DNA from: Macrostomum lignano
Taxonomy: Eukaryota
Length of the DNA stretch: 64,000 nt
NCBI GenBank assembly: GCA_002269645.1
Contig: NIVC01003738.1
Span: 15,621 to 79,620 of the forward strand
Direction: 5' to 3'
Translations under genes and position numbers: made by a program
The notes under the pieces: generated by a model
Seen by the model: only the letters and a program-made list of their open reading frames with translations
What the model was told of the DNA's origin: nothing
The model's database searches: none
Shown: positions 21,034-63,750 of the stretch, one piece after another
Position numbering within the stretch: position 1 is the first letter of the stretch
Layout of the letters: each line of letters starts with the position of its first letter

Positions 21034-21461
21034 TGACTAGAGAACCCAGGTGATTGACTAGAGAACCCAAGTGATTGACTAGAGAACCCAGGTGATTGAC
21101 TAGAGAACCCAGGTGATTGACTAGAGAACCCAGGTGATTGACTAGAGAACCCAAGTGATTGACTAGAGAACCCAGGTGATTGACTAGAGAACCCAATTGA
21201 TTGACTAGAGAACCCAGGTGATTGACTAGAGAACCCAGGTGATTGACTAGAGAACCCAGGTGATTGACTAGAGAACCCAAGTGATTGACTAGAGAACCCA
21301 AGTGATTGACTAGAGAACCCAGGTGATTGACTAGAGAACCCAGGTGATTGACTAGAGAACCCAAGTGATTGACTAGAGAACCCAGGTGATTGACTAGAGA
21401 ACACAGGTGATTGACTAGGGATCCCAGGTGATTGACTAGAGAACCCAGGTGATGGACTAGC
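21034..21461. repeat. 21-bp minisatellite (ACTAGAGAACCCAGGTGATTG)n, about 20 units
   Basis: Direct inspection. Confidence 0.96.
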
Positions 21462-29644: not shown

Positions 29645-31116
29645 ACCAACAGCCAGTTGGTAAAGATGGTGAGTAGTTGTTTGTGGTTAGTAATTCACAG
29701 TCATCGGGATTAAAAATGAGCAGCATTTGATCGGCTTCTATTAAGAGAACGTCCTAGCTCTGTTGGTAGCCAGCCTTTGGTGATTTTCTAAGAAACGGAG
29801 TGTCCTGTCCCTCTGCCATAGTCGTCTTTGACAGGAAATTCTCAACTGGAAAGATTGGTAGACTGTAGCTGAGATATGTTTTATTAACATGGCCTAATTC
29901 ACGACATGTTTCGTTTTAAAGTTGTAGCTCAGTGGGACGATCGCTCGGCAAGGTTTTTCTCGCTTCTATTGGCTTCTATACTGGCTTCACTAGTTGTGGG
30001 CTTCCTTCTGTCTATAATATACCACAAATCTGGTATGCTTTTTACCTGCGAGAGAAATCCGGTGAGTCATATTTAAGTCATTTCAAAATTCAATTTAAAA
30101 TCTGCCAGAAAGTGTTTCACGTCATTATTTCGTACCATTTACGGTGCTGTGTTCATGCATACTCCATAGATCAAAGTTCATCATGCATATTTTCTTAATG
30201 CTTCGACTATGAAATTGCGATTTTTAATTTATCCTTTATACATGGAATGAATCCTGTACGCTTGCAAAATTTCAGCCACAGAGAGGTCACACTGGACTGC
30301 GAAGTCAGCACAATGCAGGTCAGGCCGTCCCAATGCGAATACGGAACAACTTCGCAGTGCAAAATGACTCACACGGCAGCAGTGAATACGACTATCCAAC
30401 AACCGAGCAGCCAGGAAGCTGCCAAAATGAACAGTTGGGTCAAGAAGGTGCCTACACACAGGTGCTGCTGGTTCCTTTACAACAGGGATCACTGAATGAA
30501 GGTCGGGTTTACGTCAACCAGACTGAAAATGCTACTTGAGTCAGTTGAGCATTTAAGTAAGAACTTGAGAGGCTGTGAGATAGATTTTGACATTGTTGCT
30601 TGCCAAGTGCACCATTGTCCAATATTCAGTCATGTGACCCATAATGAAACACTTCAAACCGATTCTGACTTTGCAACAAGTCGGTACTGCTATGCTTAAT
30701 GATGCGACAATACTGATCACTTTGTGCACTATTTACTAGCTCTGATTTGTAGCTCTTTTTTTAGAAAAAAAGTGATGTCAACTGAGGCCTCGGAGTTTGG
30801 AATTGAGAGACGAGGAATCGATATACGCTCGTATAATCTAATTGTGGTAAAACGAGTGTTAATGCCACGTTTTCTGCTTTTATGCGTCTTGTCCATATAT
30901 ATGCATGGCTGCTGACTGCATAACTTCGAAGAGTGTCTTCAATAACTAGAAAGCAATTCGGAATTCAGTGATCACTTACTGGTGCCAGCTCCTCTACTTT
31001 GTCGGGCAGGTCCGTAGAGCTTGTTTCCTCAATATGGTCTTCCTCCGGAGTTGTCTTCTTGAATTATAAAGTCGGCCGAGTATGAGAGCGTAACAGTTTA
31101 ATCCGTCGACGTCGAT

Positions 31117-32435
31117 ATATTCCTCCAGTACAGAAATCCAATATATCCCTCGAGTGCAGAAATCCAATATATTCCTCGAGTGCAGAAATCCAATATATTC
31201 CTCCAGTACAGAAATCCAATATATTCCTCCAGTACAGAAATCCAATATATCCCTCGAGTGCAGAAATCCAATATATTCCTCGAGTGCAGAAATCCAATAT
31301 ATCCCTCGAGTGCAGAAATCCAATATATTCCTCCAGTACAGAAATCCAATATATCCCTCGAGTGCAGAAATCCAATATATTCCTCGAGTGCAGAAATCCA
31401 ATATATTCCTCGAGTGCAGAAATCCAATATATTCCTCGAGTGCAGAAATCCAATATATCCCTCGAGTGCAGAAATCCAATATATTCCTCCAGTACAGAAA
31501 TCCAATATATCCCTCGAGTGCAGAAATCCAATATCTTCCTCGAGTGCAGAAATCCAATATATTCCTCGAGTGCAGAAATCCAATATATCCCTCGAGTGCA
31601 GAAATCCAATATCTTCCTCGAGTGCAGAAATCCAATATATTCCTCGAGTGCAGAAATCCAATAATCCCTCGAGTGCAGAAATCCAATATATTCCTCGAGT
31701 GCAAAAATCCAATATATTCCTCGAGTGCAAAAATCCAATATATTCCTCGAGTGCAGAAATCCAATATATTCCTCGAGTGCAGAAATCCAATATCTTCCTC
31801 GAGTGCAGAAATCCAATATATTCCTCGAGTGCAAAAATCCAATATATTCCTCGAGTGCAGAAATCCAATATATCCCTCGAGTGCAGAAATCCAATTTATT
31901 CCTCGAGTGCAGAAATCCAATATATTCCTCGAGTGCAAAAATCCAATATATTCCTCGAGTGCAAAAATCCAATATATTCCTCGAGTGCAGAAATCCAATA
32001 TCTTCCTCGAGTGCAGAAATCCAATATATTCTTCCAGTGCAGAAATCCAATAATCCCTCGAGTGCAGAAATCCAATATATTCCTCGAGTGCAGAAATCCA
32101 ATATATTCCTCGAGTGCAGAAATCCAATATATTCCTCGAGTGCAGAAATCCAATATATTCCTCGAGTGCAGAAATCCAATATATTCCTCGAGTGCAGAAA
32201 TCCAATATATTCCTAGAGTGCAGAAATTCAATATATCCCTCCAGTGCAGAAATTCAATATATCCCTCGAGTGCAGAAATCCAATATATTCATCGAGTGCA
32301 GAAATCCAATATATTCCTCGAGTGCAGAAACCAATATATTCCTCGAGTGCAGAAATCCAATTTATCCTTCCAGTGCAGAAATCCAATATATTCCTAGAGT
32401 GCAGAAATCCAATGTATTCCTAGAGTGCAGAAATC
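31117..32435. repeat. 26-bp minisatellite (CCTCGAGTGCAGAAATCCAATATATT)n, about 50 units
   Basis: Direct inspection; source of spurious long ORFs in several frames. Confidence 0.97.
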
Positions 32436-32971
32436 CAAATCAAAGATGCACCCTAATAAAATCAACTCTATAACAATGACGAGGTCTCCAGAAAGGGCAT
32501 CTTCTTCTAGAAATAACAGAATCAGAGCCTTCTGCCCTTATCTGTTACTCTAGGCTACCAAATCAATCAAATCAATAATCCTTTAAGAGTATCGGAATCG
32601 GTCGGCAGATCCTATCCAATCCCTTAGGAATAGGGAGGCCTCACATTCAATAAAAATCGACTGATCAGTAACGGCCGGCAATAACACAGCTCTCAATAAT
32701 CAAACAACAAAGACTCTGACAAAGGCTTACCAATTGGTATTTGTCTCCCTCAGAGACTTAGCCTCGTTTGGCTGCTCTGGCAAAGCCCAAGATCTCTTGA
32801 GGCCGCCCGAGGCTGCTCCGAGTCTGCTCGGATATTTCGCTTGTACACAATTTATACACAATTTAAGTCGACCTTTAACATCTTCAAATCCGATGGTCAG
32901 CGTGGCTGACCATGTATCACTTTAGCTAAAATCCAACTCTTTATGGCCATAGACTCAACTTTTGTCTTCAC

Positions 32972-36703: not shown

Positions 36704-38388
36704 ATGTCTGATAAGCTAAACAGCGGAAATTTCAAACTAACATTTGCACTTTTGAATCTGCAAGTCTTCATCTTGTTGTCATTGGTTTCAGAGTAAGAAA
36801 CGAATAGAATGCTTTTTTAATATCGCATCCAATTGTACTAAAGAACTTATTGTTCCGCATTTCAGACACCATGCCGCAAATCACTATTGTGTGAGCGGAC
36901 TGACGCTGAGTCTGCGACTCGACGATTTCTACCACAGGGACGAGCTCATCATTCCGCAGCTGTCAGATGAGTCTGAGCAGAGTTTGATGAAGCGCAGGAT
37001 CTGTAAGTGGGCCGTCAGAGCAGACTCCAGAAGGAGGGATCTTCAACTCGTGCTGGAAGGGCGAACAGCGGGTTTTGGGAAAAACCCTGTCAGTTTAAAC
37101 ATTCGCTACTCGCCAGGTTCAAGAGGATGGGCGACTGTGTCGCCAGGAATGTTTCGCGTTTTTCCGTTGGCAAAAGGGCAAGTCTAATTTTGCTGACGTC
37201 ATGCAGTGTTTGCATGTAGCAGGTCATACCATATATAGATAAACGGCATAGAGTACTAAATATAGAGCTTTGCTTTCATTTTGGATTGCCAATTTAGTAA
37301 AATGACTAGCAAAACGCGTCATAAAAGTGAACTACTAAATGCGTCAACTACTAAAAAGATTTTTAATTTCGATTCCATGCAAAATTTTATTTCCAGCAAT
37401 CAGTTCAATGTGGAGACAAACTGGGATACGAGATATCAGAATAGAAGCATGTCAAACCTGAGGATTGTCCTGCCACTTCCCGGGTTCTGCAGCCGGGAAA
37501 TGCTCAGCTTCAACAGAAAATGCTACGCCGTGAGCTCAGCAAAGCAGAATGCTTCAGCCGCAATGTCCAGCATTGAAGGCGATGCTCAGCTGGCCAGCTT
37601 CTCCAGCATGGCTGAGATCAGCGAGCTCATCGCTGCCAGTGAGTGAGCATCGTCTTAGATTGCAATGTAGGCTATGATTTCGAAATTCAATGATAATTTT
37701 TTCATCATTTCAGACACCAAAAAGCTGCAGGAGTTCCCCTACAGAAGGCCCCTGAGCCTGGGCCAGCCGGTCCGTCTCGGCATGTTTCTGAACGCATCCG
37801 CTGCCACAGTGCTGTCCTTTGTCAGGAGAGACAGCGGTTGCCTGCTGCTACAGCCTGTGACAGATTTCAAGGACTTCTTGTAAACTTTTACTGCATTTAC
37901 TTTGCTATTGAAATGAAAGAATAACGGAGAGAATATGAATAATTGTTCTTCAGACTATCGGACAAAGTGGCGGGACCATGCGTGTCGCTGAGAGTGGCCG
38001 AGTCAGATACAGCGGTGGTCGAGTTCGTTAACTGCAGCAGCCCGATGCTGTCGCTGCTGAGCTTCCCGGAGACTGCGCGCTCCGTGCCGAGCTCAGCGAA
38101 GTGCAGCGGCATCGAGCTTGAGAATCTTATTCGTCTGAGCAGCCGTCGTCGAGACACAGTCTCAGCCACCTCGACAGTAACTGTTGATGCATCAATCCAA
38201 CCTTATTTTTCGACGAATCCCAAGCCTCAGATTTTAGTTTTCAAATCCGGGTTTTGGCATTGTGCTCAATTTTCCTGCTGATTTCGGGCATCGCATACTT
38301 TGTTGTCGCAAAGTCGGACTTTAGCAATACTCGCAAATTTTTCGAAATATTTGTCCGCCGAGATCTCAAAGGCATTGAAAATTTATAG
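36704..38388 (+). CDS. Family A copy A2 (divergent): signal peptide, CUB-like, C-type-lectin-like, TM
   Basis: Exons 36704-36792 (MSDKLNSGNFKLTFALLNLQVFILLSLVS), 36866-37177 (GC donor), 37397-37638, 37714-37879, 37954 onward, with consistent phases. The TM plus short tail (IRVLALCSIFLLISGIAYFVVAK...ENL*) ends at 38388 but lies in a different frame after about 38190, so it needs a small intron or carries a frameshift. Confidence 0.65.
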
Positions 38389-39462: not shown

Positions 39463-39707
39463 GTGTCACACAACCGGCGAGAGGCATTGCTGCCCATTCC
39501 GCCGACTCCCCTGAGCAGGCACACAAGCGCGCGATACGTACGCAGTCATACGCACAGGCACACACACGCAAAGGAGTGCACAACGGCCCCTAACTTTATC
39601 TATCGTTAGGCCAAGGACCACTAGGAACTTTTCGTTATATCTGGTCAAGTATAACGACACTTGGAATCGAGCCTGGGCTGCTGGCACATCAGAGCGCCGC
39701 GCTAGAC
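39463..39707 (-). mobile_element. SINE family 2, partial
   Basis: Homology to 6139-6480. Confidence 0.7.
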
Positions 39708-40844: not shown

Positions 40845-41181
40845 TGAGACTGTGTGAGACCAGCTAGCATCTAATTAGCACTCTGAGACAGTGTGAGACC
40901 AGCTAGCATCTAATTAGCACTCTGAGACAGTGTGAGACCAGCTAGCATCTAATTAGCACTCTGAGACAGTGTGAGACCAGCTAGCATCTAATTAGCACTC
41001 TGAGACAGTGTGAGACCAGCTAGCATCTAATTAGCACTCTGAGACAGTGTGAGACCAGCTAGCATCTAATTAGCACTCTGAGACAGTGTGAGACCAGCTA
41101 GCATCTAATTAGCACTCTGAGACAGTGTGAGACCAGCTTGCATCTAATTAGCACTCTGAGACAGTGTGAGACCAGCTAGCA
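40845..41181. repeat. 39-bp minisatellite, about 9 units
   Basis: Same unit as 18498. Confidence 0.95.
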
Positions 41182-42657: not shown

Positions 42658-43466
42658 TCACCCCTCACCTAGCCACCCCTCACCTAGCCACCCCTCACTC
42701 AGCCACCCCTCACCCAGCCACCCTCATCCAGCCACCCCTCACAAAGCCACCCCTCACCCAGTTACCCCTCACCCAGCCACCCCTCACCCAGCCACCCCTC
42801 ACCCAGCAATCCCTCACCCAGCCACCCCTCACCCAGCCACCCCTCACCCAGCCACCCCTCACCCAGCCACCCCTCACCCAGCCATCACTTACACAGCCAC
42901 CCCTCACGCAGCCACCCCTCACCCAGCCACCCTCATCCATCCACCCCTTACACAGCCACCCCTCACCCAGGCACCCCTCACACAGCCACCCCCCACCCTG
43001 CCACCCCTCACCCAGCCACCCCTCACCCAGCCACCCCTCACCCAGACACCCCTCACCCAGCCACCCCTCACCCAGCCACCCCTCACCCAGGCACCCCTCA
43101 CCCAGCCATCACTTACACAGCCACCCCTCACGCAGCCACCCCTCACCCAGCCACCCTCATCCATCCACCCCTTACACAGCCACCCCTCACCCACGCACCC
43201 CTCACACAGCCACCCCTCACCCAGCCACCCCTCACCCAGCCACCCCTCACCCAGCCACCCCTCGCCCAGCAACCCCTTACACAGCCACCCCTCACCCAGC
43301 CACCCCTCACCCAGCCACCCCTCACCCAGCCACCCCTCACCCAGCCACCCCTCACCCAGCCACCCCTCACCCAGCCACCCCTCACCCAGCCACCGCTCAT
43401 CCAGCCACCCCTCACCCAGCCACCCCTCACCCAGCCACCCCTCACCCAGCCACCCCTCACCCAGCC
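42658..43466. repeat. 15-bp CACCCCTCACCCAGC array with degenerate higher-order blocks
   Basis: Direct inspection. Confidence 0.94.
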
Positions 43467-44213
43467 AATCGCACGCACTGCAGAGCCGTGCCAGACGGCC
43501 GTAGACCTGGGCTCGAGTCCGCACTGGCTGGTGGGCCAAACCCGCCACATCGCAGTGACCTCCAGCGCCTGCAGCATCTGAAATGTGAGCCACAGCTGCC
43601 GGCTGCTGCAGGCTGATGGCGCTTCACCCGTGCCGCTCCGCAGAGTTGAAGTACGCTTGCACTGAGACTGGCCAAAGTGCTCAGAGAAGTGCAGAGCCTC
43701 ACCTGTCCCAATCTGCACCCTCATTCGCATTGCAGCAGAGCAGCTTCAGCAGCGTTCACCAGCTGCAGGTGAGCAGGTCGATGGCTCACCAGAACTGGTC
43801 GGTTCGCTGTAGCGTCAACCAGTCAGGTGTGGTGTATGATGAGGCTGAGAGTCTGGAGCAGCTGCGACCGCCGATTTTCTGTGAGTGCCGGACAGTGCAT
43901 GAAGCGATTCTGTGAACCTTTGTTTGAATGCGATTTCCAATTTCACTGCAGACCCGGAAAGCATTCAGGTAGATGCCAGCATTGAGAGCTCGCTACTGCA
44001 CCTGGCTGTGGCTGCCTCTGACGCTCGGCCTCCAGTGTCATCTGTTGTCTGCCAGATCGCAAATTTCACTGTGAGTGCTTGATGCGAGCCCGAAAGAGGG
44101 CCGAATAAGCGCGCATGACAGTAGCGTGCAGATGCATCTCTTTGCTACCATCTTTAATATCTTTTCAATGTTAAAATGCTGTGATGAAAACGTTGCTTGA
44201 ATTTTTACGAGGT

Positions 44214-44621
44214 GCTGACTAGAGAACCCAGGTGATTGACTAGAGAACCCAGGTGATTGACTAGAGAACCCTGGTGATTGACTAGAGAACCCAGGTGATT
44301 GACTAGAGAACCCAGGTGATTGTCTAGAGAACCCAGGTGATTGACTAGAGAACCCAGGTGATTGACTAGAGAACCCAGGTGATTGACTAGAGAACCCAGG
44401 TGATTGTCTAGAGAACCCAGGTGATTGACTAGAGAACCCAGGTGATTGACTAGAGAACCCAGGTGATTGACTAGAGAATCCAGGTGATTGACTAGAGAAC
44501 CCAGGTGATTGACTAGAGAACCCAGGTGATTGTCTAGAGAACCCAGGTGATCGACTAGAGAACCCAGGTGATTGACTAGAGAACCCAGGTGATTGACTAG
44601 AGAACCCAGGTGATTGACTAG
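44214..44621. repeat. 21-bp minisatellite, about 19 units
   Basis: Same unit as 21034. Confidence 0.95.
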
Positions 44622-47709: not shown

Positions 47710-48900
47710 TTCGTCTGTTACCCTCTGTCAGTAGCAGGCAGCCCTGATTATGCCAGTGTGGTTTTCGTCTATGATTGTGACGTGGTCAGTTTAAGGTGAT
47801 CCCGAAAAGGGCCGCTGGACTATATTTTCCCTTGTAATTTCTCATATTAATTTCTCCAATAGTTTATTTTAACGTTTACTTATAGTAGAGCCCAACGATT
47901 TTGTGGCAATTTCTAATTCACTGTATATTTTGCTATCCTCTCTTGCGACCGTATAAAATTGGCACGATTGATAATTTTAAGTTCTCTCGCCAGCCAATGA
48001 AAACCACTCGTGCTTCGCGCTACCCCCCTCTGCGCTCCTTTATGAAACCCCCCGCCTGGCGGCGGCACTCCTCACCGCCCGTCCTTATCTGTGCTTCTCT
48101 CTTCCTCCCGGCCTGTCCTCGGCCTTGTTTTCCTTCTCTCTGTCTGGACCAGCCTGTTTGCACTGCCTGCCACTGTCTGCCACGGCTAACGCCAATCTCA
48201 CCACTACGCATCTGCCACTGTTGTGCTCATCGCCGTTACTCACCACGTTGCATCGTCTTGCATCACTCGCCTACCACTCAACTACAATCTCTAACTCACC
48301 TTCAATTCAAAACCATTGTTGCAGCCGCCAGTGCCCCAAAAGCGCAATAAGTTCTATATTGATATTAACCGCATCGAATATTGATCTCAACAATAATAAC
48401 CAACTACGGCCAGTTTCCGGCCTTGTATGCCAAGTGCTCCGCTACACAAATCCGCTATCAAGACTTGACTCGATTCATTTGGGACTAAAACGGCCCTTTT
48501 AAGGGTCACGGACAACATCAATAACGTGACAATGATGACAGCAGAAACTTCAATAGTTTTCGTTCGGTAGCGGCAGTTGTGTCCTTTTTTGTTTTTTTGT
48601 TTGTCTGGTTCAGTAACGCAGTGCAGAATTATACATGCGAATGTTTTACATGAGCAGTGCGACAACAAGCCTCAATGTGTCTCAATATTTTGAGTTCTCG
48701 GAGAACACGGTGCTTCCAATAAGCCTCGACTAGAATTCATTTGTCTGGATTTCGGCTTGGAACAGACCAGCCTGTATCTGCACTGAAAATCTGTGCAGTT
48801 TTAATGAGCCGGCGTTAAGAGTACGACATGAATTATGAATATTTTGATGAAACACAAGATTAATGTTTGAGATGTTTAGAGTTAGTTTTGCATGTGGTTT
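47710..48900. mobile_element. Approximately 1.2-kb insertion containing a MITE-like segment
   Basis: Absent at the paralogous site near 6120; imperfect inverted repeat GTGAYCCYKAAAAGGGCCG near 47796 and 48490-48510. Confidence 0.35.
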
Positions 48901-48950
48901 CAGTGTTTTTTTGTTAGAATTATACTCGTACCATATTTTTATTAAAGGCT

Positions 48951-49238
48951 GGGGCTGTGGCGAACTTTAAGCGACATTGTCACACAACCGGAGAGAGGCA
49001 TACAAGCGCGCGGATACGTACACAGATATACGCACAGGCACACACACACACAATTTTATTTATGGTAAGGCATGTACACTTCCCTGTGCCTTGGGTGTTG
49101 GCCCTCAAGGCAATTAATTGCACCAGCAGAGCTAAGCCGAGATTTCAATTTAACCCCAAATTAATGTGACTGCACTTGGAATCGAGCCTGGGCCGTTGGC
49201 ACATCAAAAGCGCCGCGCTAAACCACTAGGCGACAGAC
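48951..49238 (-). mobile_element. SINE family 2 (paralog of 6139-6480, internal deletion)
   Basis: Same position in the duplicated block. Confidence 0.75.
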
Positions 49239-49992
49239 CCCCCTTCATTTATATGTATTCTACAGATCTTTACCTTTTGTGTATGTCAATTTAATCTTAT
49301 CAGAAATATTAAACTGTCGAGTCTTAAAATACCGCTGACTTGTTTTCCAGTATGAAAAAACAGATAAGGCTGTAAAGGATTTTTTAGTTACATAAACACA
49401 CATTGCACACCGTTTCATGAAGAAAGTGAATTCCCAATGCACGAATTTGTGCATAAAATACGGACTGCTCATAACATGGTCAGGTGATTTGAAACGCAAG
49501 TCTCGAGGTCAATAAAAATCCATTAAAAGTCCATAACGGAGGTCGGAGGAGCTGAGAAGTCGATAATATAGCATAAATATATAATGCATATTTATTTACT
49601 GGTTCATCATCAAGTCCAGCAGCCATTTTGGTAAGTTGATAAGAACTATAAGTATGAAGGATTTGACTATCTTGAGTAATCTAAAACGATCAAAATGCCT
49701 GATTAGCCTCTTTTATTCTCTGATTTCGCATGTGTCAGCCAATATGTCTGCTGTCTTTCGCCACTCATTTAGAACTGATTGATGAATGATGCTCTCAGTT
49801 GAGTGCATTTTGGTCCAGTTTGCGTCTGGTTCAGTGGTTCAGTATTATTTTATTGTTTCTGCTTGATTTATTAATCACTGATCGTTGCGAACGCATTTAT
49901 GCTTGGATTTTTTCACTGTTTTGTTCTTATTTATAGCGTATTGACTGTTGTGCTGTCCATATTGCATAAAAGCGTTAATAATTGTTTTTTTT

Positions 49993-50611
49993 GAGATTTG
50001 CGATTTGAAATTTGAGATATGAGATTGAGATTTAAGATTGAGATTTGAGATTTGAGATTGAGATTTAAGATTGAGATTGGAGATTGATATTGAGATTTGA
50101 AATTTGAGATTGAAATTTGAGATTTATAATTTGATACATGAGATTAAAATTTGAGATTGAGATTTGAGATTGAGATTTGAGATTGAGATTTGAGATTTGA
50201 GATTGAGATTGAAACTTTAGATTTTAGATTGAGATTTAAGATTTGAAATTTGAGATTGAGATTGAGATTAATATTTGAGATTTGCGATTGAGATTTGAGA
50301 TTTGAGATTTAAGACTTGAAATTTGAGATGAGATTGAGATTTGAGATTGAGATTTCAGATTTTAAATTGAGATTGGAGAATTGAAATTTGAGATATAAGA
50401 TTGAGATTGAGATTTAGGATTGAGATTGAGATTGAGATTAGAGATTTGAGATTGAGATTTGAGATTTGAAACTTGAGATATGAGATTAAGATTGAAATTT
50501 AGAGTTTAGATTGAGATTTGTGATTTGAGATTTGAAATTTCAGAGTTGGGATTGAAATAGGAGATTACAGATTGTTATTGGGATTAAGATTTGAGATTGA
50601 GATTGAGTTTA
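49993..50611. repeat. Degenerate GAGATT array
   Basis: Direct inspection. Confidence 0.9.
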
Positions 50612-51308
50612 GGGAATTGCTGAGATGTCAAGGCTGAGGTCAAAAGCTGATTTGACCAGGAAATTGAGCAGAGATTTGAGCAGAGATTTGAGCAGAGATT
50701 TGACCACATGTAGTTTATTTTTAAAAAATTTTCCACTCTTTGTTGGCTCCCCTACGTGGGGCGCTCATTGCTGGGCAGACTGCCTTTTTTATTACAAAAT
50801 ATCCAAAAGGCCTCAAGAGTTCAGTACAGGGCCTCACTAGCAAATCGCCCAGACTCCATCATCTCGAGTCTAATCGGAGTCCGCATAGTCCGATTATTCC
50901 TAGAAAGTACTTCATGGTGTTACGAATCCTCGAAGTACGAGTTGTACAAGCAAATGTCAATGACTTAGTCAACAAAATCACTCGGGTTTATAAAAAATGC
51001 AGGTTTATCAATCTTTATAAGCTTCGTGTACGAGTCCTACAGTTGCCACCTGAGACAAAAACATTGCTCCATCCAGAAAATAAAGCATGGTCAAAGTCAG
51101 AAGTAGAGCTATATCATTGTGATTTCTATTCAAAGACCATATTTCCTGCAGAGTCCAGTAACTCTATCTGTCTGTAGCTCAGCACATCAACTTGAGCTGT
51201 TTCAATCGCCCAATTGCAGAACTTCCAACGACTTTTTCTGTCAGTCGGTCTACTGGTATCAGCTTTGCAGTGAGTAGCGCGCATTTCATCAATTCTGTTC
51301 TTGAAAAG

Positions 51309-52382
51309 ACACAGACACGCAGACACTAAAGCAGACAGACAGACACGCAGACACTAAAGCAGACAGACAGACACGCAGACACTAAAGCAGACAGACAGAC
51401 ACGCAGACACTAAAGCAGACAGACAGACACGCAGACACTAAAGCAGACAGACAGACACGCAGACACTAAAGCAGACAGACAGACACGCAGACACTAAAGC
51501 AGACAGACAGACACGCAGACACTAAAGCAGACAGACAGACACGCAGACACTAAAGCAGACAGACAGACACGCAGACACTAAAGCAGACAGACAGACACGC
51601 AGACACTAAAGCAGACAGACAGACACGCAGACACTAAAGCAGACAGACAGACACGCAGACACTAAAGCAGACAGACAGACATGCAGACACTAAAGCAGAC
51701 AGACAGACATGCAGACACTAAAGCAGACAGACAGACATGCAGACACTAAAGCAGACAGACAGACACGCAGACACTAAAGCAGACAGACTGACACGCAGAC
51801 ACTAAAGCAGACAGACAGACACGCAGACACTAAAGCAGACAGACAGACACGCAGACACTATAAAGCAGACAGACAGACACGCAGACACTAAAGCAGACAG
51901 ACAGACATGCAGACACTAAAGCAGACAGACAGACATGCAGACACTAAAGCAGACAGACAGACATGCAGACACTAAAGCAGACAGACAGACACGCAGACAC
52001 TAAAGCAGACAGACAGACACGCAGACACTAAAGCAGACAGACAGACACGCAGACACTATAAAGCAGACAGACAGACACGCAGACACTAAAGCAGACAGAC
52101 AGACACGCAGACACTAAAGCAGACAGACAGACACGCAGACACTAAAGCAGACAGACAGACACGCAGACACTAAAGCAGACAGACAGACACGCAGACACTA
52201 AAGCAGACAGACAGACACGCAGACACTAAAGCAGACAGACAGACATGCAGACACTAAAGCAGACAGACAGACATGCAGACACTAAAGCAGACAGACAGAC
52301 ACGCAGACACTAAAGCAGACAGACAGACATGCAGACACTAAAGCAGACAGACAGACATGCAGACACTAAGACAGACACTGGG

Positions 52383-52417
<35 letters not shown>

Positions 52418-52418
52418 A

Positions 52419-52467
<49 letters not shown>

Positions 52468-52840
52468 CAGACAGACACGAAGACACTACGGCTCTAAGAC
52501 AGACAGACACTAAGACACGCAGACACTACACAAGATAATAAGAGACCCAGACACTAAGACAGCCAGACACTACACAAGATACTATGACACCCAGACACTA
52601 AGACACTCAGACACTAAGACACGCAGACACTACACAAGATACTATGACACCCAGACACTAAGACACTCAGACACTAAGACACGCAGACACTACACAAGAT
52701 AATAAGAGACCCAGACACTAAGACAGCCAGACACTACACAAGATACTATGACACCCAGACACTAAGACACTCAGACACTAAGACACGCAGACACTACACA
52801 AGACACTAAGACACCCAGACACTCCACAAGACACTAAGAC
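51309..52840. repeat. 28-bp satellite (ACACGCAGACACTAAAGCAGACAGACAG)n followed by GACA and GACACTAA blocks
   Basis: Direct inspection; paralogous position to 8270-14271. Confidence 0.95.
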
Positions 52841-53339
52841 AGGCGCTACCAAAGTACCAAAGCTGCAATAATTTCAACGCAAAGCTGAACAAAACTTCAA
52901 TCAGAATCGAAGCCGCCAATCACTACTGCGTGAACCAGCTGACGCTAAAAATCAGTCTGGACGATTTCTATCACCGCGACGAGATTTTGATTCCGCAACT
53001 GCCGCACGAGACTGAGGTCAGTGAGGTGCGCCATCGCAGGTGCAGGTGGATTGTAAGCTTCAACACCGGCAGCAAATGCACGCAGCTGGTACTGGCTGGG
53101 TTGCCAGCTCGGGAGAACTCCAGTTTCAGTTCGACTGACAGCCGTTTAAGATTCACCTCGATGTCGAATGCAAAAACGACCGTCTTACCTGGAATATTCC
53201 ATGTCGTTCCTTTGGAGAGCAAGTACGTTACCTGTAGTCAGTGCTTGTCGCTTTATTACCATTATTTCGCCCAACACAAGTGAAATGGAAAATTTGCAAT
53301 AAAGACTCCCTGCACGGAGGCGGCCTCTCCTGCGTGCGC

Positions 53340-53535
53340 CCTACCCCGTGCTCTGTGCTGATTGGCTGCGGCCAGCCCGTCTGTGACACGAAGGCTGCGC
53401 CCTGCCCCGTGCCCTGTGCTGATTGGCTGCGGCCAGCCCGTCTGTGACACGAAGGCTGCGCCCCGCCCCGTGCCCTGTGCTGATTTGCTGCGGCCAGCCC
53501 GTCTGTGACACGAAGGCTGCGCCCTGCCCTGCGCG
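53340..53535. repeat. 61-bp tandem repeat x3 containing ATTGG (CCAAT) boxes, in an A3 intron
   Basis: Period 61 (53355, 53416, 53477); single unit in A1 at about 14765-14850. Confidence 0.85.
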
Positions 53536-54130
53536 GGGTTCTGATTGGCTGGCCTTATGCGCAGTTGGCGGGCTTCGCTGATGGGGTCGCCTAGTCCCGC
53601 CCTATTGTACGGGTTTTTCTTTATTATTTATTACTTTTTTTGCTTCCTGTTGGGTCTTGGTTCCATGGCGACGAATCATTCACGGTAGCTGACTTTGGAG
53701 GTCAGGTAAGCAGCCTATTCAGCTGTGTACAAACCGAGGCCAACTCTGCTTAACCTGCAGCGTTAGCGGCACTTCAGACTAATTTAATTTACACGTACAG
53801 AATATAAATAAATAAACTGATTACAGTAGAAAAGCATGAGGTGTTCTTAGCTTTAAATCTAAGTTCCTAGGTTACACACCGTTTGCAGCAAAATCTTGGG
53901 ATCCGCGAGCTGATGGCCAAAATGCTGCAAACTACAGATTTCTGCTGCCACTTCCCAGCATCTGCAGCCGCGACATGCTGAGCTACCGGAGCAGCTGCTT
54001 TGCTGTTGTCTCACTTCAGCAGAGCTTGACAGATGCGCTGTCCAGCATCAGGGGTGACGCTCAGCTAGCCAGCTTCACCAGTTGGTCCGAGATAGAGGAG
54101 TTCATTGCATCAAGTGAGTGGTTTTCACAT

Positions 54131-54535
<405 letters not shown>

Positions 54536-55869
54536 TTGATAACTTGAAACTCTAGACAGAGAGGTATTGTGAGCAAGTGTTAAAAATAGAATTATTGGCT
54601 TCCAGTGAAATTTTCACGACTTGCGAGTCCAAAAGTCCTTCTGCTTGAGTTGCTCATGCTCTTAACAATTATCTTTATAGTAAGTCTCCAAATAGCTGAC
54701 CCTCTTTCATACAAAAAGTCACATCAACATTGCAGTAAGATCGCGAATGCCTCTGGCGGCAACTGTGTTTCGTTGAGAGTCGACTCAAACGGACCTGTTA
54801 TTGCCTTTGTTAACTGCAACATCCCGATGCTGTCGCTAGTCAGCTTCCCAGAGACTCATTCCGGTCTCAGCCAGTTGGACTGCAATATATCAGGCAGATT
54901 GTCTGACTTGTTCTCCGCAAATGAGGCTGTGAAACAGGTGAAAGCGGATGCTTCAATGAAGTTGCAGGGTGACGAAGACGATCGTGTGCCACCAGGAGTA
55001 TCAAGTTTCGAGCTCAATGAAGCTATGAGAGGGAGTGAAAATCAACCTTCAGCCAGCAATCAGAAGGCTCCCTTTGCCATACCGGTCATCGCGGCAATAC
55101 TCCAATACTCTTTGTTTTTACTCTGTTTTTACTTTACACAACTTTTTACTTTCTGAACTATTTCTATTGTCAATCGCATTCAAGTACCGCCTCTGCATAG
55201 GTAATTCTGCAAACTTAGTTTTTTTGATTTAGATAAAACTCAAAAACTCTAAGTACTTCAGATTAATAATGATGCCTAGTAAAAGGCTGAAATGATTTGT
55301 GTTTTATTAACGTATTGATTTTCAGTTTAGTGCTAATCATATTTACTATCGATATTATTCATGTATATAAATTGAGTATAAGCCAGTCGGTGTTTATCAT
55401 TATTTTTTAACTAAACACACAAATTGATCAATTCATTTTTACAGTGTAAACGGGTTCAATTTTTTTATTAGCATGAGACATTTTAAAACACTGAGAGGAG
55501 CTATTTACTACCTACCAGGCAGATGCTTGGCTTGAAGTAAATCCTGATTTCTGCGTCAGCTGCTTTGGCTATTACAGAATACAGAGTCACAGAGTAATAA
55601 ATAAGCCAAACTGACTAAATTCAAATGTAAGGATTCAAAACATTCACATAAATGCTTAAAATAGCCTTAGTAAAAACAGTCCATTTTTCAGGGACATTAA
55701 CTGTAGCAGCAGTTCAAGGCAATCGTCGGAGAGGCGGCATATTGATGTAAACAAAGCAGGCAGTCATAAAATCTTCAAGTCCAAGCTGCATCCATCGCAC
55801 ACTGCGTAAAACTTTTAAGTAAAAATCGACATTAGCGAAAGCTTTCTTTAGCTAAATATTAGATTTTCA

Positions 55870-58800
55870 ATGAAGGATTTTTACAAATTGCTGCAGTTGT
55901 TGCTGCTATGCAACACGAGATTCACCGCCAGCAACCCAGACTGCTCCTCCACGAGTCAAGCCGGTGAGGCCAGCGAATTTAGCACGTAAAATGCATATCA
56001 ACTCCAGCTAACACAGAGATTGAAAGTAAGCACTATCTACTCTTTTCCAGTGACAGTGCAGCTGAGCAGGGCTGACGTTCTGCGCACCTGGCAACCCAGC
56101 GGTGCGCACTGCCGTTGGTGGGAGAGTCGGCAGTCAGAGACAAACCGATTCCCTGCTGCTGTGCGGCCCGGGCCTCGGTGGCTTGTGATGCAGCTGACGC
56201 AGCCGATGATGCTGGAGGCGGTAAGCGTGCGAGACTGGGGTGAGTGACGCTGACCGACTCATTCTCATGATGCATGATGAGGCAGAGGGAGCCTTGGACC
56301 CAAAGTGTGAGACAGTGTGATGCTAGCATCTAATTAGCACTCTGAGACAGTGTGAGACCAGCTAGTATCTAATTAGCACTCTGAGACAGTGTGAGACCAG
56401 CTAGCATCTAATTAGCACTCTGAGACAGTGTGAGACCAGCTAGCATCTAATTAGCACTCTGAGACAGTGTGAGACCAGCTAGCATCTAATTAGCACTCTG
56501 AGACGGTGTGAGACCAGCTAGCATCTAATCAGCACTCTGAGACAGTGTGAGATCAGCTAGCATCTAATTAGCACTCTGAGACAGTGTGAGACCAGCTAGC
56601 ATCTAATTAGCACTCTGAGACAGTGTGAGACCAGCTAGCATCTAATTAGCATCTAATTAGCACTCTGAGACAGTGTAAGACCAGCTAGCATCTAATTAGC
56701 ACTCTGAGACACTATGATACCAGCTAGCATCTAATTAGCACTCTGAGACAGTGTGAGACCAGCTAGCATCTAATTAGCACTCTGAGACAGTGTGAGACCA
56801 GCTAGCATCTAATTAGCACTCTGAGACAGTGTGAGACCAGCTAGCATCTAATTAGCACTCTGAGACAGTGTAAGACAAGCTAGCATCTAATTAGCACTCT
56901 GAGACAGTGTGAGACCAGCTAGTATCTAATTAGCACTCTGAGACAGTGTGAGACCAGCTAGCATCTAATTAGCACTCTGAGACAGTGTGAGACCAGCTAG
57001 CATGTAATTAGCACTCTGAGACAGTGTGAGACCAGCTAGCATCTAATTAGCACTCTGAGACAGTGTGAGACCAGCTAGCATCTAATTAGCACTCTGAGAC
57101 AGTGTGAGACCAGCTAGCATCTAATTAGCACTCTGAGACAGTGTGAGACCAGCTAGCATCTAATTAGCACTCTGAGACAGTGTGAGACCAGCTAGCAGCC
57201 AAGCACTCGTGTTGCAGATGGCCAGTGGCACGCAGCAGCTCCGGTCGGCTCGCCTGTGTCAGCGGTCGGAGCCTCGAGCCTCCCGCTGGAGCTGCAGCTG
57301 GAGGATCCGTGCCGCGCCAGCTGGGAGGCCTTCGGCAGCAGCGACCGCTGGAGGCAGATTGGGGTGAACGGAGTAGATCAAGTAAGCTGCTTCATTTGAA
57401 TTATCTTATCATAATAATGAAATTAATAAATCCATCCATTTCACACTTCAGCCCGTAGTTCGTTTCCTTGTGCTAAGTAGCTTGAGAACTGCTGGACTTA
57501 GCTGGAGGGCCGTCTCATTAACAGGTTCCAAAGAGACTTTTAAATTTTATGAAGTTATCACTGAATCATAGCTTATTGTGAATTAAGTGCTTTAGAAGCA
57601 GGTGCAATTTTTCTTGTAGGTCGCTTTCTACCGCTGAGCCTCACAGTAACTGACAACCGTTTTTGCCCTCTGAGAGACCTGTCCGCCTTGCACGATGGAG
57701 TTGAAGCCTGCTTCTCTGTTTCAAGATGTACCAGCGAATCAATTCAATGCTTCTTTAACCTAAGCAATGGCGCAACTCTGGAGCCGAGACTGGTCTGCTC
57801 AACTCTTCTTTATAGCGTGCTATCAATACTTCTTCTTGCACTGACTTGATACAAAATTCGCTTTTTCAGCTACGAAGCCAAAAGCAGCAAGCTGAATTCG
57901 AGTTCACAGCCAATTTCTCGCTGCACGGAGCACTGCTCACCTGTCTTCTGCCTGATCGGCCAGGGATTCGAATCGAGCAGACCATTGGAATCGTTGGTGA
58001 GAAAGAAGTGTCTGCCTGAGTTAAAAAATGTATTTTAAGTCCGCTTTGAAGATTACAAAGCGAAACATGCACTTTTCAGTCACACCAAGTGTTGAACTGT
58101 CGTTATCAACCGTGTGGGTGATTGGTCGCAGAGCCAAGGTGCACTTTTTCTCAAGCCCAGCTTATCCTCCTCAGCAGCACAGGTGCCAAATTATCTCTGG
58201 CAGCAGCACCTGGGAACTGAATGAGCATTTTAGTAAGGTAAGTAGTATTATATTATTGTTGAAAATGCTGTACCTTGCCCAATCATGTACTTTTCCATGA
58301 AATAAACTTCCAGACTAGACAGGCTTATATCAGGAACAGCATCAACATGTCGCTAACTGAAGTAAAGTCTGAATTTGTTGTCACAGTCACGTCAGACATG
58401 CTGAATGGCACCGTGAGATGCAGTAGCAGCTATAAAAGTACAAGTCAAGGAGAAGTCATGAAAGATATCGATATTTCAAGCATCAGCGGTAAGTGCTTGC
58501 ATTAGAGAATCTCCTATACGCCCGATTGGAAGAGCCATAAAATCTCCTCATTTCAGAGCCTTGCACAACTGCCATTCATGTAGACAACATCCAGTACTCG
58601 TATCAGGTTGTACAAGTGACGTCACTGAAGTGCAGCATTTGGAATGTTCAGCACAGCTGCTGGCTTGTCAAGCCCAAAGAAGATGTCCTGGAGCATCTAA
58701 TTAAGCTTGCTGTACGGTTCTTTGATTTTGTAATAATGCTTTTTATTCAGAAGTTACTGCAACAATATCTGATGTCTTCTATTGCAGCAAGACGGCTTCA

Positions 58801-61119
58801 GCAGCACTCACAGGTTGAATATTATGAAACAAGAGCAGAAAAGAGACTGGCTAGTGAGATGCAGCGTTAATCAGTCGGGAGTGACATACCCGGATGTGGA
58901 AATTGAGTTAGCAAGCGATGCTGACAGTGAGTCAAACGATGCATTCAATCACTGTTAATTGTTCCAATGCAAGTTCAAAGGTTTTTTACCACTTAAATCT
59001 ACACTACACGTTGCTACATTTGTACTCGTATTAATACGAGCGTAATGCAAGAGACCTGCGAGCACCCCGACGCTACGTCTTCGGCGACCTTGTCCGCAAT
59101 CAGCTGCCCGTTCCGCTCACTCCTGATCACATACGAGCGTACGAGCGCCTCAATACTGCACACAGGCACGCACTCATACGCACGCTCCCACAAGGTGTAC
59201 TGCGGCCCTGACTTTCTAAGCGTCAGGCATGTACCTCTCTGGGCCTTAAGGGCTGGTCCTCATGAGCACTGAGCACGTTTGCTCTACTCACCTCCAGAAT
59301 AAAAACAAATGAGCGTTTTTAATATTATAAACTGTACTCGTTCGTATTCTGTTGGCTGCCATTAAAGCGACTTTTGATAACAGTCAACCCACAGCCAGCG
59401 TGGAGTCGACCCAAATTAATTGGTCATTCCACATGTAAGCACTCGAGAGTGCTTACTTAAGCAACTATTCTTAATCGTTAAATTTTCAGGTAGTGTATCT
59501 TCATTTGCTTATTACCCCTCGTAACTTTGAGGTTGTAACTGTTGCGAGCCTAAGTGTTCGATGTGTAACTACTCTGCCACTTACTAACCCCACTTTCTTC
59601 AGCTTTCTACTATCAGTGTGGACTGAGTTGCATAATTTTGCCGATTTTATCTGCCCTCGGCCTCATCCTGAGCTGCATGATTATTCGAAGAATTCGCCGC
59701 GCTAAATCAGCAAAGCCAAACTCGACTTCAAGTAGAAGTTCGACATTTAGAGGACGACGTACCCTCCTCTCGAGTGCGGCCACCTCGCCGCAGGCACAGG
59801 TAGGGTTAGCCACAGATTTAGTTTGTACATTAGGGCACGCATGTAAGTGTCAAATACTGGTGTTTTGATGAAGAATAGCTTTAAACTTAAAAGAAAATTC
59901 TAGCTACCCGGGGTTGTTTTGGCTATTCGCTCAAGCACTTTTGCTATTGGCTTTTGCCTGAAACTGAAGCTATTTCTTAGATTAGCCTGGACACAGATTG
60001 CCTGGTAAATAGCGCTGCTTATCTGATCAGATTTCAGGTGTGCACAGAAGCACAGTTCTAATTAGAACTTCCCTCAGCCTGAACGGCAATATTACATAAG
60101 TCCATGTGACTAAAATTTAGCAGTGAATTTCGGTGCATCTAATACCAGCTTTTCTAGAGCTAGATCCACTTTTGTTTCTTTAAAAGTTTAATTCCCATTC
60201 TAAATAGCAATATAGTAGAGATATTCTGTTGAGTTTGTGAAATGAATTGCGATCGCTTTCAATCAAGCGTGCTATGGCCTGCACGAGTATTCTATGAAGC
60301 CGTAGCCCATTGGTCAATCATGGATGAATAAAACCTTTGGTCTAGTGCGGCGCTCTGATGTGCCAGCGGCCCAGGCTCGATTCCAAGTGCAGTCATTAAT
60401 TTGGGGCTAAATTGGAATCTCGGCTTGGCTCTGCTCGTGCAATTAACGCCCCTGATCAGGGCCAACCCCCAAGGCACAGTGAAGTGCACATGTCTAAGAT
60501 AAAGTTAGGGCCGCTGTAAACTCCTGTGTGAGTGAGTGCCTGTGCGTATGACTGCGTACGTATCGCGCGCTTGTGTGCCTGCTCAGGGGAGTCGGGGGAA
60601 TGGGCAGCAATGCCTCTCGCCGGTTGTGACAATGTCGCCTAAAGTGCATCATGGGTGCAAACAGCTCCTTGCCTGTAACAAAAAAATGGCCCTTATATTC
60701 CGTAGCCCAGAATCATGAGCAGGCTGAACTGCTAGATAGACAAGGAAGAAGCTGGCGTGATCAAAGCAATCTGTTAACTTTCTCACCTTTAAGGCCTATT
60801 AAAGTATCATGTTAAAATTCTTCAAAAGAAATGACTCTGAATAACAGAAATCAATCGTTTCCACCCCCAGCGAGCGGCACCACAGCTCACTCATCATCAG
60901 GTTGATTCCTCGGCGTCAGTGAGCACAGGTGGTCCACCACCTGCAGAAAGCAGCAGCCGCGGCAATGAAAACAAGTCAATTAGCAGTCAAGAGACCGACC
61001 CAGTGTACGAAGAAGTATCTTTGTGTGTCTACAGGCCGGTGCACCCGCTGCCACGGTACTCACGGCAGTTCTCAGAAAAAAATTGTCGACGCGCCCACGA
61101 CTCCAGTCGGTTTGATTGA
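55870..61119 (+). CDS. Family B copy B4: intact 630-aa type I membrane receptor (signal peptide, discoidin-like, 3 Ig-like, TM, Tyr-motif tail)
   Basis: Twelve GT-AG exons, all phases consistent and no stops: 55870-55963, 56051-56239, 57218-57381, 57452-57524, 57620-57792, 57870-57996, 58080-58237, 58314-58488, 58557-58711, 58788-58926, 59603-59799 (TM GLSCIILPILSALGLILSCMII then RRIRR), 60871-61119 (PVYEEVSLCVYRPV). Total 1893 nt. Confidence 0.82.
56322..57197. repeat. 39-bp minisatellite, about 22 units
   Basis: Same unit as 18498. Confidence 0.96.
60339..60645 (+). mobile_element. SINE family 2 in the last intron of B4
   Basis: Reverse complement of 6139-6480. Confidence 0.75.
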
Positions 61120-62179
61120 AACTCTTGATCACATTCTGTAGGAACCATTGAATAGAATGCACTGCAAACGGCACTTCGAGTATGTTCAGTAAACATTCTG
61201 ATTCTACAAAAATAGGGATTGCTTCATCACTATTTGTATTACTAATATTATCATTATTAAATGCACACACCCAGTGTTTTGAGTTTATTTTTTACGATAT
61301 TATTTGAGGCAACCTTATAAACACAGCGAAATAAGAAATTAAAAAAAGCTAGTGCGCAACGTTTTTTGGCGCAAATCGAAATTTAAAATAGAATCTCATA
61401 TGCGCAAACAAATTATTCGAGATTCTTTTCGGTACCGATATGAAGCCTCAGGGCAGTTGCATTCTGGCCTGCGTCATGCCTTTGATGTATTTTTTGGGAT
61501 TTCCATTATAAGAAGGGCCAGATAGAGAATCTAGCGCATTACTGTGGAGAGAGGAGAGGGAGAGAAAGAAAAGGGAGAGAAAAAGAGAAGAGATAATACA
61601 GTTGAGAGAGACAAGCTTTGTGCGGACTGCATTGCTATTTTGAAGTTTCAAAGGACCAGATGCGTATTAGATAGAGAGACTTCGCAGGTCGCATGTTACC
61701 TGGGAACCGCAGTTTGCCAACCCCTGTTTTAGAGTTATTACGTAAAGTACTTTATCCTCTGTAGGAAGTCGCTGTTAAATTCGAAACTTTATCCATGATT
61801 TCCTGTTCAAACTTATAACAGGAGCACAATAAAAGTTCCCACTACACCTAAGCAGGAAACGAACTTCACTTCCTACACAGCACCCACATGGCATTTTGGG
61901 CAGGTCCTGTTCTCATAAGATATCTTTGGTCTCGCAGTCCTCATATATTGCTTTGCAGGCCAGTTTGTGGTTCGCTAATCTAAACTGTAACAGGGTGTGC
62001 TTAAATTCAATTCCAGCTCAAAAGCCAGCTCTGTGTGCTCTGATTGATTTTGCTACTCGTCCATGCTGACAGTTTCGCATCATTTTGCTGTTGACTTTAG
62101 CTGCAATGCCAGCCTCTGTAGCTATATTGTTGACTATATATGGTTAGCTATATATGGTTAGCTATATATGGTTAGCGTT

Positions 62180-63109: not shown

Positions 63110-63750
63110 ATGGATCACAATCTTGTATGCATTCTGGTGCTGTTACTGAGCTCAAGAATTGCATGCAATGCTCTGCTCTGCACTGATGCAAGTCACGAGA
63201 AGGGTCAGCTGAGTTACTTACTGCCTTTTGAGCCTTTCATTCATGCCTCAGAAAATTTAGCGAATCCTTTGCGATAAATGTTTTAGTGACAGTGCAGCTG
63301 AGCAGGGCTGACGTTCTGCGCACCTGGCAACCCAGCGGTGCGCACTGCCGTTGGTGGGAGAGTCGGCAGTGCTGGAGGCGGTGAGCTTGCGAGACCGGGG
63401 TGAGTGACGCTGACCGACTCATTCTCATGATGCATGATGAGGCAGAGGGAGTTTGAGACACAAAGTGTGAGACAGTGTGAGACCAGCTAGCATCTACGAG
63501 CGTAATTAGCACTCTGAGACAGTGTGAGACCAGCTAGCAGCCAAGCACTCGTGTTGCAGATGGCCAGTGGCGCCAAACACTCGTGTTGCAGATGGCCAGT
63601 GGCTCGCAGCAGCTCCGGTCGGCTCGCCCGTGTCAGCGGTCGGAGCCTCGAGCCTCCCGCTGGAGCTGCAGCTGGAGGATCCGTGCCGGCCAGCTGGAGG
63701 CCTTCGGCAGCAGCGACCGCTGGAGGCACCTTGGAAGATCTTACAACAAG
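63110..63750 (+). pseudogene. Family B copy B5 (5' part), frameshifted
   Basis: Signal exon 63110-63203 (MDHNLVCILVLLLSSRIACNA); exon 2 at 63287-63399 is 113 nt instead of 189 nt (76-nt deletion); exon 3 has a duplicated acceptor (63560 and 63592) and small deletions. Confidence 0.75.

Follow-up and report, generated by a model that had tools for sequence, protein, structure and literature searches.

A predicted twelve-exon, three-Ig membrane protein gene of Macrostomum lignano and the homogenised head cassette of its family

The window examined here is a 64,000-nucleotide stretch of the Macrostomum lignano genome (contig NIVC01003738.1 of assembly GCA_002269645.1, positions 15,621 to 79,620 of the forward strand), within which copies of one gene family, designated B1 to B5, are found. 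The subject of this report is B4, located at 55870–61119 on the + strand. Rebuilt from the sequence, B4 is composed of 12 exons with a coding sequence (CDS) of 1893 nt for 630 amino acids, and there are no internal stops before the TGA at 61117–61119. All 11 introns are of the GT-AG type, and the phases after successive exons run 1,1,0,1,0,1,0,1,0,1,0. The rebuilt gene agrees exactly with the phase-perfect, 12-exon, 630-residue model with its stop at 61117 that an earlier note on this DNA had put forward. Nine introns measure 68–95 nt; the longer ones are intron 2 (978 nt), intron 10 (676 nt) and intron 11 (1071 nt). The minus strand at B4 holds no long open reading frame, and when the window was scanned for Rfam families and tRNAs, no match fell in the B4 region. 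Two candidate polyadenylation signals, picked out by eye, lie 69 and 137 nt past the stop (AGTAAA, 61188–61193; ATTAAA, 61256–61261). We consider it quite probable that M. lignano, or a very close relative, has in B4 an intact protein-coding gene, predicted to encode a type I single-pass membrane glycoprotein.

Exon 1 (55870–55963, 94 nt, ending in phase 1; all exons are on the + strand) supplies the ATG and a hydrophobic leader, MKDFYKLLQLLLLCNTRFTA, predicted to be a probable signal peptide. It shares 90% amino acid identity with exon 1 of B2 (18057–18146), and the ATG is also found in a second copy of the B4 locus on contig L002 (Mlig_3_7 NIVC01001776.1, the contig with the gene for the family protein P0009). 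In the family protein alignment, a hydrophobic N-terminal stretch followed by a conserved Cys is seen in all members. Exon 2 (56051–56239, 189 nt, phase 1 to 1) encodes the first part of a conserved head domain and is 93–98% identical in DNA to 11 other family copies from the window and the loci L001–L003. The head continues through exon 3 (57218–57381, 164 nt, phase 1 to 0) to exon 4 (57452–57524, 73 nt, phase 0 to 1), which encodes its last strands (PVVRFLVLSSLRTAGLSWRAVSLTG) and aligns to ISFIRL...LSWQALSITG of the family protein P0006, and also to P0009 and P0016.

The following six exons encode three immunoglobulin (Ig)-like modules. The first half of module 1 is in exon 5 (57620–57792, 173 nt, phase 1 to 0), which ends at a weak donor, GTCTGC, and aligns to the same three proteins; its counterpart in the L002 copy is 97% identical with the GT kept. 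The second half, with the family-invariant Cys256, is in exon 6 (57870–57996, 127 nt, phase 0 to 1), an exon included in the database models P0001 and P0002. Module 2 is divided between exon 7 (58080–58237, 158 nt, phase 1 to 0), in which P303, H307 and C309 are invariant, and exon 8 (58314–58488, 175 nt, phase 0 to 1), which holds C362 and an internal cryptic GTGAGA donor that is used by WormBase-type models. Module 3 begins in exon 9 (58557–58711, 155 nt, phase 1 to 0; EPC, LKCSIWNVQHSCW), whose boundary and donor type (GTACGG) are also readable in B2, and ends in exon 10 (58788–58926, 139 nt, phase 0 to 1), with 48–52% amino acid identity to B1–B3. Exon 11 (59603–59799, 197 nt, phase 1 to 0) encodes a predicted transmembrane (TM) helix at about residues 486–510, the stop-transfer sequence RRIRRAK and a Ser-rich juxtamembrane region. 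The cytoplasmic tail, with Y594 (YEEV), Y602 (YRPV) and Y611, is completed by exon 12 (60871–61119, 249 nt, including the TGA), which matches the P0001 C-terminus at 100% identity. A naive ATG-to-stop splice search also produced a stop-free chain of 16 exons and 547 amino acids, which was dropped for its implausible micro-exons in favour of the homology-supported model. Since such a different chain can be built, an open exon chain alone is weak evidence and outside support is required.

A protein search with the concatenated B4 exons (5.8e9 proteins) returned 25 matches, all of them from Macrostomum lignano, with HMMER E-values from 1e-196 to 1e-28; most are labelled merely 'Ig-like domain-containing protein' or 'hypothetical protein'. 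A profile search (1.84e9) gave 40 representatives at E<=0.001, and nine of the ten looked up by name were from M. lignano, the other being a weak HMMER match to frog VCAM-1 (E 6e-6). All B4 exons align to family proteins, including exons 4 and 5, which are skipped by the nearest public model, and the Cys, Pro, His and Trp positions that are invariant in the family alignment are all kept in B4. Literature searches for Macrostomum papers on a family with this head and Ig-like modules found none. As far as sequence can tell, B4 is a complete new member of an uncharacterised receptor family of the Ig superfamily (IgSF)-like kind, restricted to M. lignano in the databases searched.

For a comparison of introns, the NCBI-annotated proteins P0006 (BOX15_Mlig007224g1) and P0009 (BOX15_Mlig025426g1) were mapped exactly to their genomic loci. 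Both are 35–38% identical to B4 and carry a fourth module, with the architecture and intron map otherwise in common. The phases are 1,1,0,1,0,1,0,1,0,1,0,1... in P0009 and 1,1,1,0,1,0,1,0,1,0,1,0 in P0006. Introns 1–10 of B4 fall in the same alignment columns as those of P0009 (within 0–5) and have the same phases, and the map of P0006 differs from that of B4 solely by the absent intron 3, exons 3 and 4 being fused there. An intron at the intron-3 position, of phase 0 in P0009, is also present in B2, B3 and the P0016 gene; it is thus a family feature that was lost from the P0006 gene. We regard the gene structure and the family membership of B4 as secure on these grounds.

The predicted protein is laid out as a leader, a Trp-rich head of ~143 residues (residues 32–174, exons 2–4), three modules of ~100 residues each (175–273, 274–384 and 385–482), a TM segment and a tail. 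The near-invariant head sequence of the family, VTVQLSRADVLRTWQPSGAHCRWWESRQSETNRFPAAVR.GPRWLVMQL.QPMMLEAVSVRDWDGQW...SSLPLELQLEDPC.ASWE, is present in B4, and residues 32–141 differ at few positions from nine other copies. Exons 2–4 encode a separate, non-Ig head domain, which was missed in the earlier note. Five N-glycosylation sequons are found in the ectodomain. The sole strong hydrophobic segment after the leader, CGLSCIILPILSALGLILSCMII, spans residues 486–510, contains no charged residue and is followed by RRIRRAK; its 19-residue Kyte-Doolittle maximum is 2.69 (residues 492–510). In B4 and in other members, the Ig-like modules are succeeded by one TM segment and then by the cytoplasmic tail, and the P0006 model also has a TM helix. 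The B4 tail is Ser-rich and 120 residues long. The leader, the one strong TM segment with its basic flank, the sequons and the tyrosine motifs of the tail are all consistent with the description of B4 as a receptor gene.

Support for the Ig-like assignment comes from the modelled fold of paralogues and from key residues, and not from sequence profiles: Pfam returned no match for B4, P0006, P0009, P0016 or P0025 even at E<=10, and none for the fused models P0007, P0008, P0012, P0021 and P0023. The fold was modelled on the paralogues P0006 (with the family alignment supplied) and P0027, B4 being covered through the alignment. In the AlphaFold model of P0006, residues 172–600, corresponding to four modules, are all-beta with a predicted local distance difference test (pLDDT) score of 75–90, and a TM helix spans residues 607–639; module 1 of P0027 is likewise all-beta with pLDDT 75–90. 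A Foldseek comparison of a paralogue model with the PDB gave SYG-2 D1-D4 as the best match (1e-12), with the IgM B-cell receptor, KIT, ICAM-5, nectins and CD22 also matched (E 1e-12 to 1e-7). In B4, module 2 displays C309...W318...C362 (53 residues) and module 3 C410...W413/W420...C461 (51 residues); module 1 has C204...C256 (52 residues) and no Trp. These cysteines presumably occupy the B and F strands.

Each module corresponds to a pair of exons (5+6, 7+8 and 9+10) with a phase-0 intron inside and the phase-1 introns 4, 6, 8 and 10 at the flanks, and because the pairs are bounded in phase 1, modules could be gained or lost with the frame kept. A fourth, membrane-proximal module is present in P0006, P0009 and P0025 (in P0009, exons of 107 and 121 nt), and with P0025 as a guide at least its first exon can be found in B1, B2 and B3; matches to its second half are weak in B2 and B3 (E 0.21 and 0.009). 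B4 and the L002 copy pass directly from module 3 to the TM exon, and P0003, P0004 and P0005 also have no module 4. The earlier proposals that B4 carries three modules against at least four in B1 and B2, and that ectodomain length varies within the family, are borne out to this extent. A 15-bp repeat, AGCCACCCCTCACCC, lies just upstream of the module-3 'EPC' exon in B1, B2 and B3 (68, 9 and 54 copies at 922–1947, 20149–20286 and 42659–43467); the equivalent intron 8 of B4 is 68 nt long with no repeat. A 21-bp repeat is found further downstream in B2 and B3 (21033–21460 and 44216–44621).

Several observations weigh against the reading of B4 as an intact receptor gene. Three of its donors are weak (GTTCCA, GTCTGC and GTACGG), and no public protein in the search equals the 630-residue model. 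The closest, P0001 (UniRef A0A1I8G4X5), matches B4 at ~99% identity in exons 2, 3, 6, 7, part of 8, and 12; exons 1, 4, 5 and 9–11 and the end of exon 8 are absent. P0001, P0002 and P0029 pass from exon 3 straight to exon 6 or 8, leave out exons 4–5 and 9–11, and cut exons 8 and 10 short at internal cryptic donors. The main products of the locus could conceivably be isoforms of this type, that is, secreted, truncated proteins that do not include the TM exon, and the three independent public B4-type models do share their junctions, all in frame. However, the junctions cut the Ig F strands and remove conserved cysteines: the GTGAGA sites in exons 8 and 10 are codons of a conserved V-R-C (GTG AGA TGC) and mimic a donor. 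The NCBI models of P0006 and P0009 do not use such junctions and retain the full exons, and both B4 and the L002 copy keep the skipped exons open and conserved. We therefore regard the junctions as probable prediction artefacts, and short isoforms as the main products appear improbable. The M. lignano genome is that of a difficult neopolyploid (PMC10733133). Public models of B4-type loci are truncated or mis-spliced, and the 630-residue model is the first complete one for such a locus; its intron map and module logic could serve as a template for re-annotating the whole family.

A second set of observations raises the question of whether B4 is a young pseudogene, unexpressed or recently silenced, in which perfect phases reflect recent descent and not present function. 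The L002 copy is full-length (48350–53865, exons 48893–53095) and lies in a segment collinear with the window from 39.8 to 64 kb at 84–97% identity. In this closest paralogue 11 nt are deleted from exon 6 (L002 50213–50328), which shifts the frame, and 3 nt from exon 8; the copy may itself be a pseudogene or an assembly variant; exon 6 is intact in P0002, another B4-type model. No NCBI model in the protein search is identical to B4, and none appears among the gene calls for L002 where the paralogous locus lies. Within the window, B3 has an in-frame TGA at 43579–43581 (+); it replaces the Trp that the family conserves in the CSIWNV motif of the exon that opens module 3, and B1 and B2 are open there. 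B3 may therefore be a pseudogene in this assembly, so that pseudogenes do occur in the family. B5 (63285–63734, cut by the window end) has an exon 2 without 75 nt that match B4 56135–56209, 25 head codons being lost in frame.

Comparison of B4 with the L002 copy nevertheless argues against silencing. All 22 of the 22 splice dinucleotides are kept when the B4 exons are projected on that copy. The exons are 95.1% identical (93 substitutions) against ~90.8% for the introns, the exons diverging about half as fast, and none of the 93 substitutions creates a stop in the B4 frame, where ~4 would be expected under neutrality (P~0.016). The ratio of nonsynonymous to synonymous divergence (dN/dS, NG86) is 0.57 with a bootstrap 95% confidence interval (CI) of 0.38–0.84, at a synonymous divergence (dS) of 0.077; for exons 4–12 alone it is again 0.57 (CI 0.36–0.90). 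A ratio moderately under 1, with upper bounds of 0.84–0.90, leaves some room for the pseudogene, and in the opposite sense all residues invariant in the family are kept. On balance we hold a pseudogene to be rather unlikely. Purifying selection on B4, for which the earlier note argued, appears real, although it is weak. The comparison with B2 that had been suggested as a check is uninformative because dS is saturated (amino acid identity is 40–43% in exons 9–10), and the ratio against B1 is not estimable, dS being saturated or undefined; the L002 paralogue was used for this reason.

The L002 copy was also considered as a homeologue from whole-genome duplication, which is unproven: its divergence of 4.9% in exons and ~9% in introns is greater than the values reported between M. 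lignano subgenomes, 1.1% for CDS and 2.2% for the genome (PMC10733133). Given this excess, the two copies probably diverged before the genome duplication, and the L002 copy is more likely an older segmental paralogue of B4. P0001, at ~99% identity, looks more like a subgenome copy of B4 than the L002 copy does.

The remaining points against the receptor reading concern the head and the tail. The head gives no Pfam match (E<=10) and no sequence match in a PDB profile search, which returned only chance matches to a G protein-coupled receptor (E>=0.036), and it is modelled at pLDDT below 50 in two AlphaFold runs (P0006 and P0027). A possible resemblance to the galactose-binding-like or discoidin (F5/8 type C) jelly-roll found no support in these same searches. 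The tail has neither a canonical immunoreceptor tyrosine-based inhibitory motif (ITIM, [SIVL]xYxx[IVL]) nor an activating one (ITAM, YxxL/I-x6-8-YxxL/I): the spacing of YEEV-x4-YRPV is too short for an ITAM, and the residue at -2 is unfit for an ITIM. YEEV does resemble pYEEI, the docking motif for Src-family SH2 domains. Tails differ by subfamily, with an ITIM-like SVYLVL in the B1 type, YEEV/YRPV in B4, YSQI in the P0009 type and GHYDLDG..FVxY in the P0003 and P0016 types.

The most distinctive feature of the locus is a cassette at 56045–57355 (+), which takes in exon 2, the whole of intron 2 and exon 3 as far as nt ~137, and which is 90–98% identical in DNA at all family loci examined. DNA of B4 can be aligned with its paralogues in the window from 56045 to ~57355 only (from 55555 for B2), at 90–97% identity. 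Past ~57355 there is no DNA similarity to B1–B3, tblastn detects only exons 9–10 (37–52%), and dS is saturated; the strong divergence of exons 4–12 that had been noted earlier is evident in all three measures. L001 has the cassette, L002 has seven copies of it and L003 two; none of the family loci fetched lacks it. Its borders are sharp, the 5' one at the exon-2 acceptor and the 3' one at nt ~136–143 of exon 3. Among ten copies the cassette dS averages 0.06 with a maximum of 0.094, and the downstream exons of the same genes share 30–48% protein identity. The cassette intron itself is 94–98% identical between copies, and GC content at third codon positions (GC3) is 0.77 in the cassette versus 0.51 in exons 4–12 of B4.

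Given the low dS, the conserved intron, the sharp borders and the raised GC3, constraint at the protein level is insufficient as an explanation, and the simplest reading is that gene conversion, apparently with a GC bias, makes the cassette evolve in concert. The membrane-distal domain is thus the invariant part of the family, and the stalks, TM regions and tails are anciently diverged. Intron 2 of B4 contains a 39-bp minisatellite (56322–57197, +; 22.2 copies of the unit GCTAGCATCTAATTAGCACTCTGAGACAGTGTGAGACCA), which also occurs in B2 (4.6 copies, 18497–18677) and B3 (8.6 copies, 40845–41181) and is a plausible initiator of conversion. Each 39-bp unit holds the palindrome CTAATTAG with a homeodomain-type TAATTA core, in ~22 tandem copies in B4 intron 2. 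Homogenisation of the cassette escaped the earlier note and is more interesting than B4 as a single gene; the minisatellite-bearing, sharply bounded cassette is also a clean case in nature in which to study the GC bias of gene conversion. At another family locus, the NCBI gene call for P0009 spans 77 kb (L002 10001–87216), twelve of its exons lying within 4.5 kb and a GC donor joining them to three exons at 82–87 kb across several other family copies. The repeated cassette has probably led to a mis-join in this call.

Among the neighbouring features, B2, B3 and B4 are each preceded by a copy of another repeated coding unit (14320–15436, 36864–38104 and 52876–54916), which gives no Pfam match and is 27–53% identical to the N-terminal 290 amino acids of P0007, a fused model. 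The window therefore seems to be built of tandem units with two genes each. In B5 the region of the exon-3 acceptor is also duplicated over 32 bp (63540–63603). A dispersed repeat of ~350 bp occupies 60338–60686 (+) in intron 11 of B4, with inverted copies at 6122–6467, 39469–39707 and 48996–49225 (-) and a fragment in intron 10 (59168–59262); the copies show 74–96% identity, and Rfam and tRNA scans of the repeat gave no match. A tRNA-Cys-like call is placed at 48371–48457 (-), not far from one of these copies. Between the genes are AGACAC-type arrays with periods of 8, 28, 36 and 44 bp together with a 26-bp repeat of 51 copies (8268–10150, 13662–14272, 51306–52841 and 31115–32438), which explain the strong AT and GC skews there.

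Taken together, these features suggest how B4 may work. After removal of a predicted signal peptide (exon 1), the protein would consist of a Trp-rich head (exons 2–4), three Ig-like sandwiches, a TM helix (exon 11) and a tail of ~120 residues (exon 12). It would act as a cell-surface receptor whose three-Ig stalk carries a binding head common to the whole family and whose tail would signal once phosphorylated on tyrosine. The family is a tandemly clustered multigene one in which gene conversion apparently keeps the cassette for most of the head near-identical, and other members couple the same head to other tails, such as the ITIM-like SVYLVL of the B1 type. The analysis shows the gene structure of B4 and its place in the family, the topology features of a membrane protein, an Ig-like fold for the modules of paralogues, weak purifying selection and the concerted evolution of the cassette; that B4 is expressed, that the head binds a ligand and that signalling is tyrosine-based is what we infer.

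It is possible, if not favoured, that B4 is instead an adhesion or recognition protein of the Ig cell adhesion molecule (IgCAM) type, in which the contacts made by the head are homophilic, or heterophilic across the family, and the motifs in the tail are incidental. Adhesion molecules (SYG-2, ICAM-5, nectins and VCAM-1) give the best matches in structure, the two exons per Ig module in B4 are also a feature of neural IgCAM genes, and a head identical across paralogues could represent a common interaction surface. Sharp differences between the tails of the subfamilies, with short tyrosine motifs including the ITIM-like one of the B1 type, are nonetheless more typical of signalling receptors. 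Whether adhesive or signalling, a clustered, species-restricted IgSF-like family with a homogenised head and diverse tails is a candidate for a part in immunity, self/non-self recognition, or gamete and mating recognition. Macrostomum is a model for regeneration and reproduction.

Three known systems may be set beside the family. Like the IgCAM ectodomains (SYG-2/nephrin-like proteins, ICAM-5, VCAM-1, nectins and KIT), the stalk appears to line up Ig-like sandwiches in tandem as a rod (Foldseek E 1e-12 to 1e-8), with Cys-Cys spacings of 51–53 residues in modules 2 and 3 of B4 and phase-1 module borders. In contrast to them, sequence identity is ~10%, Pfam gives no Ig match, and there is an extra non-Ig head and an unrelated tail.

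A second comparison is with the Alr family of the Hydractinia allorecognition complex (PMC9546547), which is likewise invertebrate, lineage-restricted, tandemly clustered and made up of unusual single-pass IgSF proteins. In the M. lignano family the Ig-like domains escape profile detection and are recognised by structure prediction, and the tail motifs vary. Alr proteins reportedly share both traits, their Ig-like domains being invisible to profiles. The membrane-distal domain of Alr is said to be the variable one, whereas in the M. lignano family it is invariant. No cnidarian is among the 25 protein-search matches (25/25 M. lignano) or the named profile representatives (9/10 M. lignano), and we know of no allorecognition biology in Macrostomum.

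The closest parallel is with paired receptors of vertebrates. In Siglec-11/16 (PMC5701461) and the CEACAMs (PMC7042247, PMC2832619), ligand-binding domains are homogenised by gene conversion. As in the M. lignano family, these are clustered type I Ig-like receptors with near-identical membrane-distal exons, sharp tracts and differing TM and cytoplasmic parts, and some M. lignano members (the B1 type) have an ITIM-like tail. There is no sequence homology, so that the parallel is one of evolutionary pattern alone. The homogenised head of the M. lignano family is non-Ig, homogenisation involves 12 or more copies on four or more contigs and not pairs, and the tract includes the minisatellite-bearing intron. 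Compared with the ITIM/ITAM paired receptors (KIR, LILR, Siglec and CEACAM), B4 has no canonical ITIM or ITAM and no charged TM residue; homogenisation of the presumed binding domain, as in those receptors, is seen in the cassette. We tentatively propose that the family is a flatworm counterpart of the vertebrate paired immune receptors, a suggestion well short of an established one. One non-Ig head would be copied by GC-biased conversion between dozens of loci, dispersed as well as clustered, and bind the same ligand, stalks of two to four modules and tails (SVYLVL, YEEV/YRPV, YSQI and GHYDLDG..FVxY) would diversify, the minisatellite may initiate conversion, and B4 would be the intact three-Ig YEEV member. 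If true, the evolutionary pattern of paired receptors would be extended outside the vertebrates.

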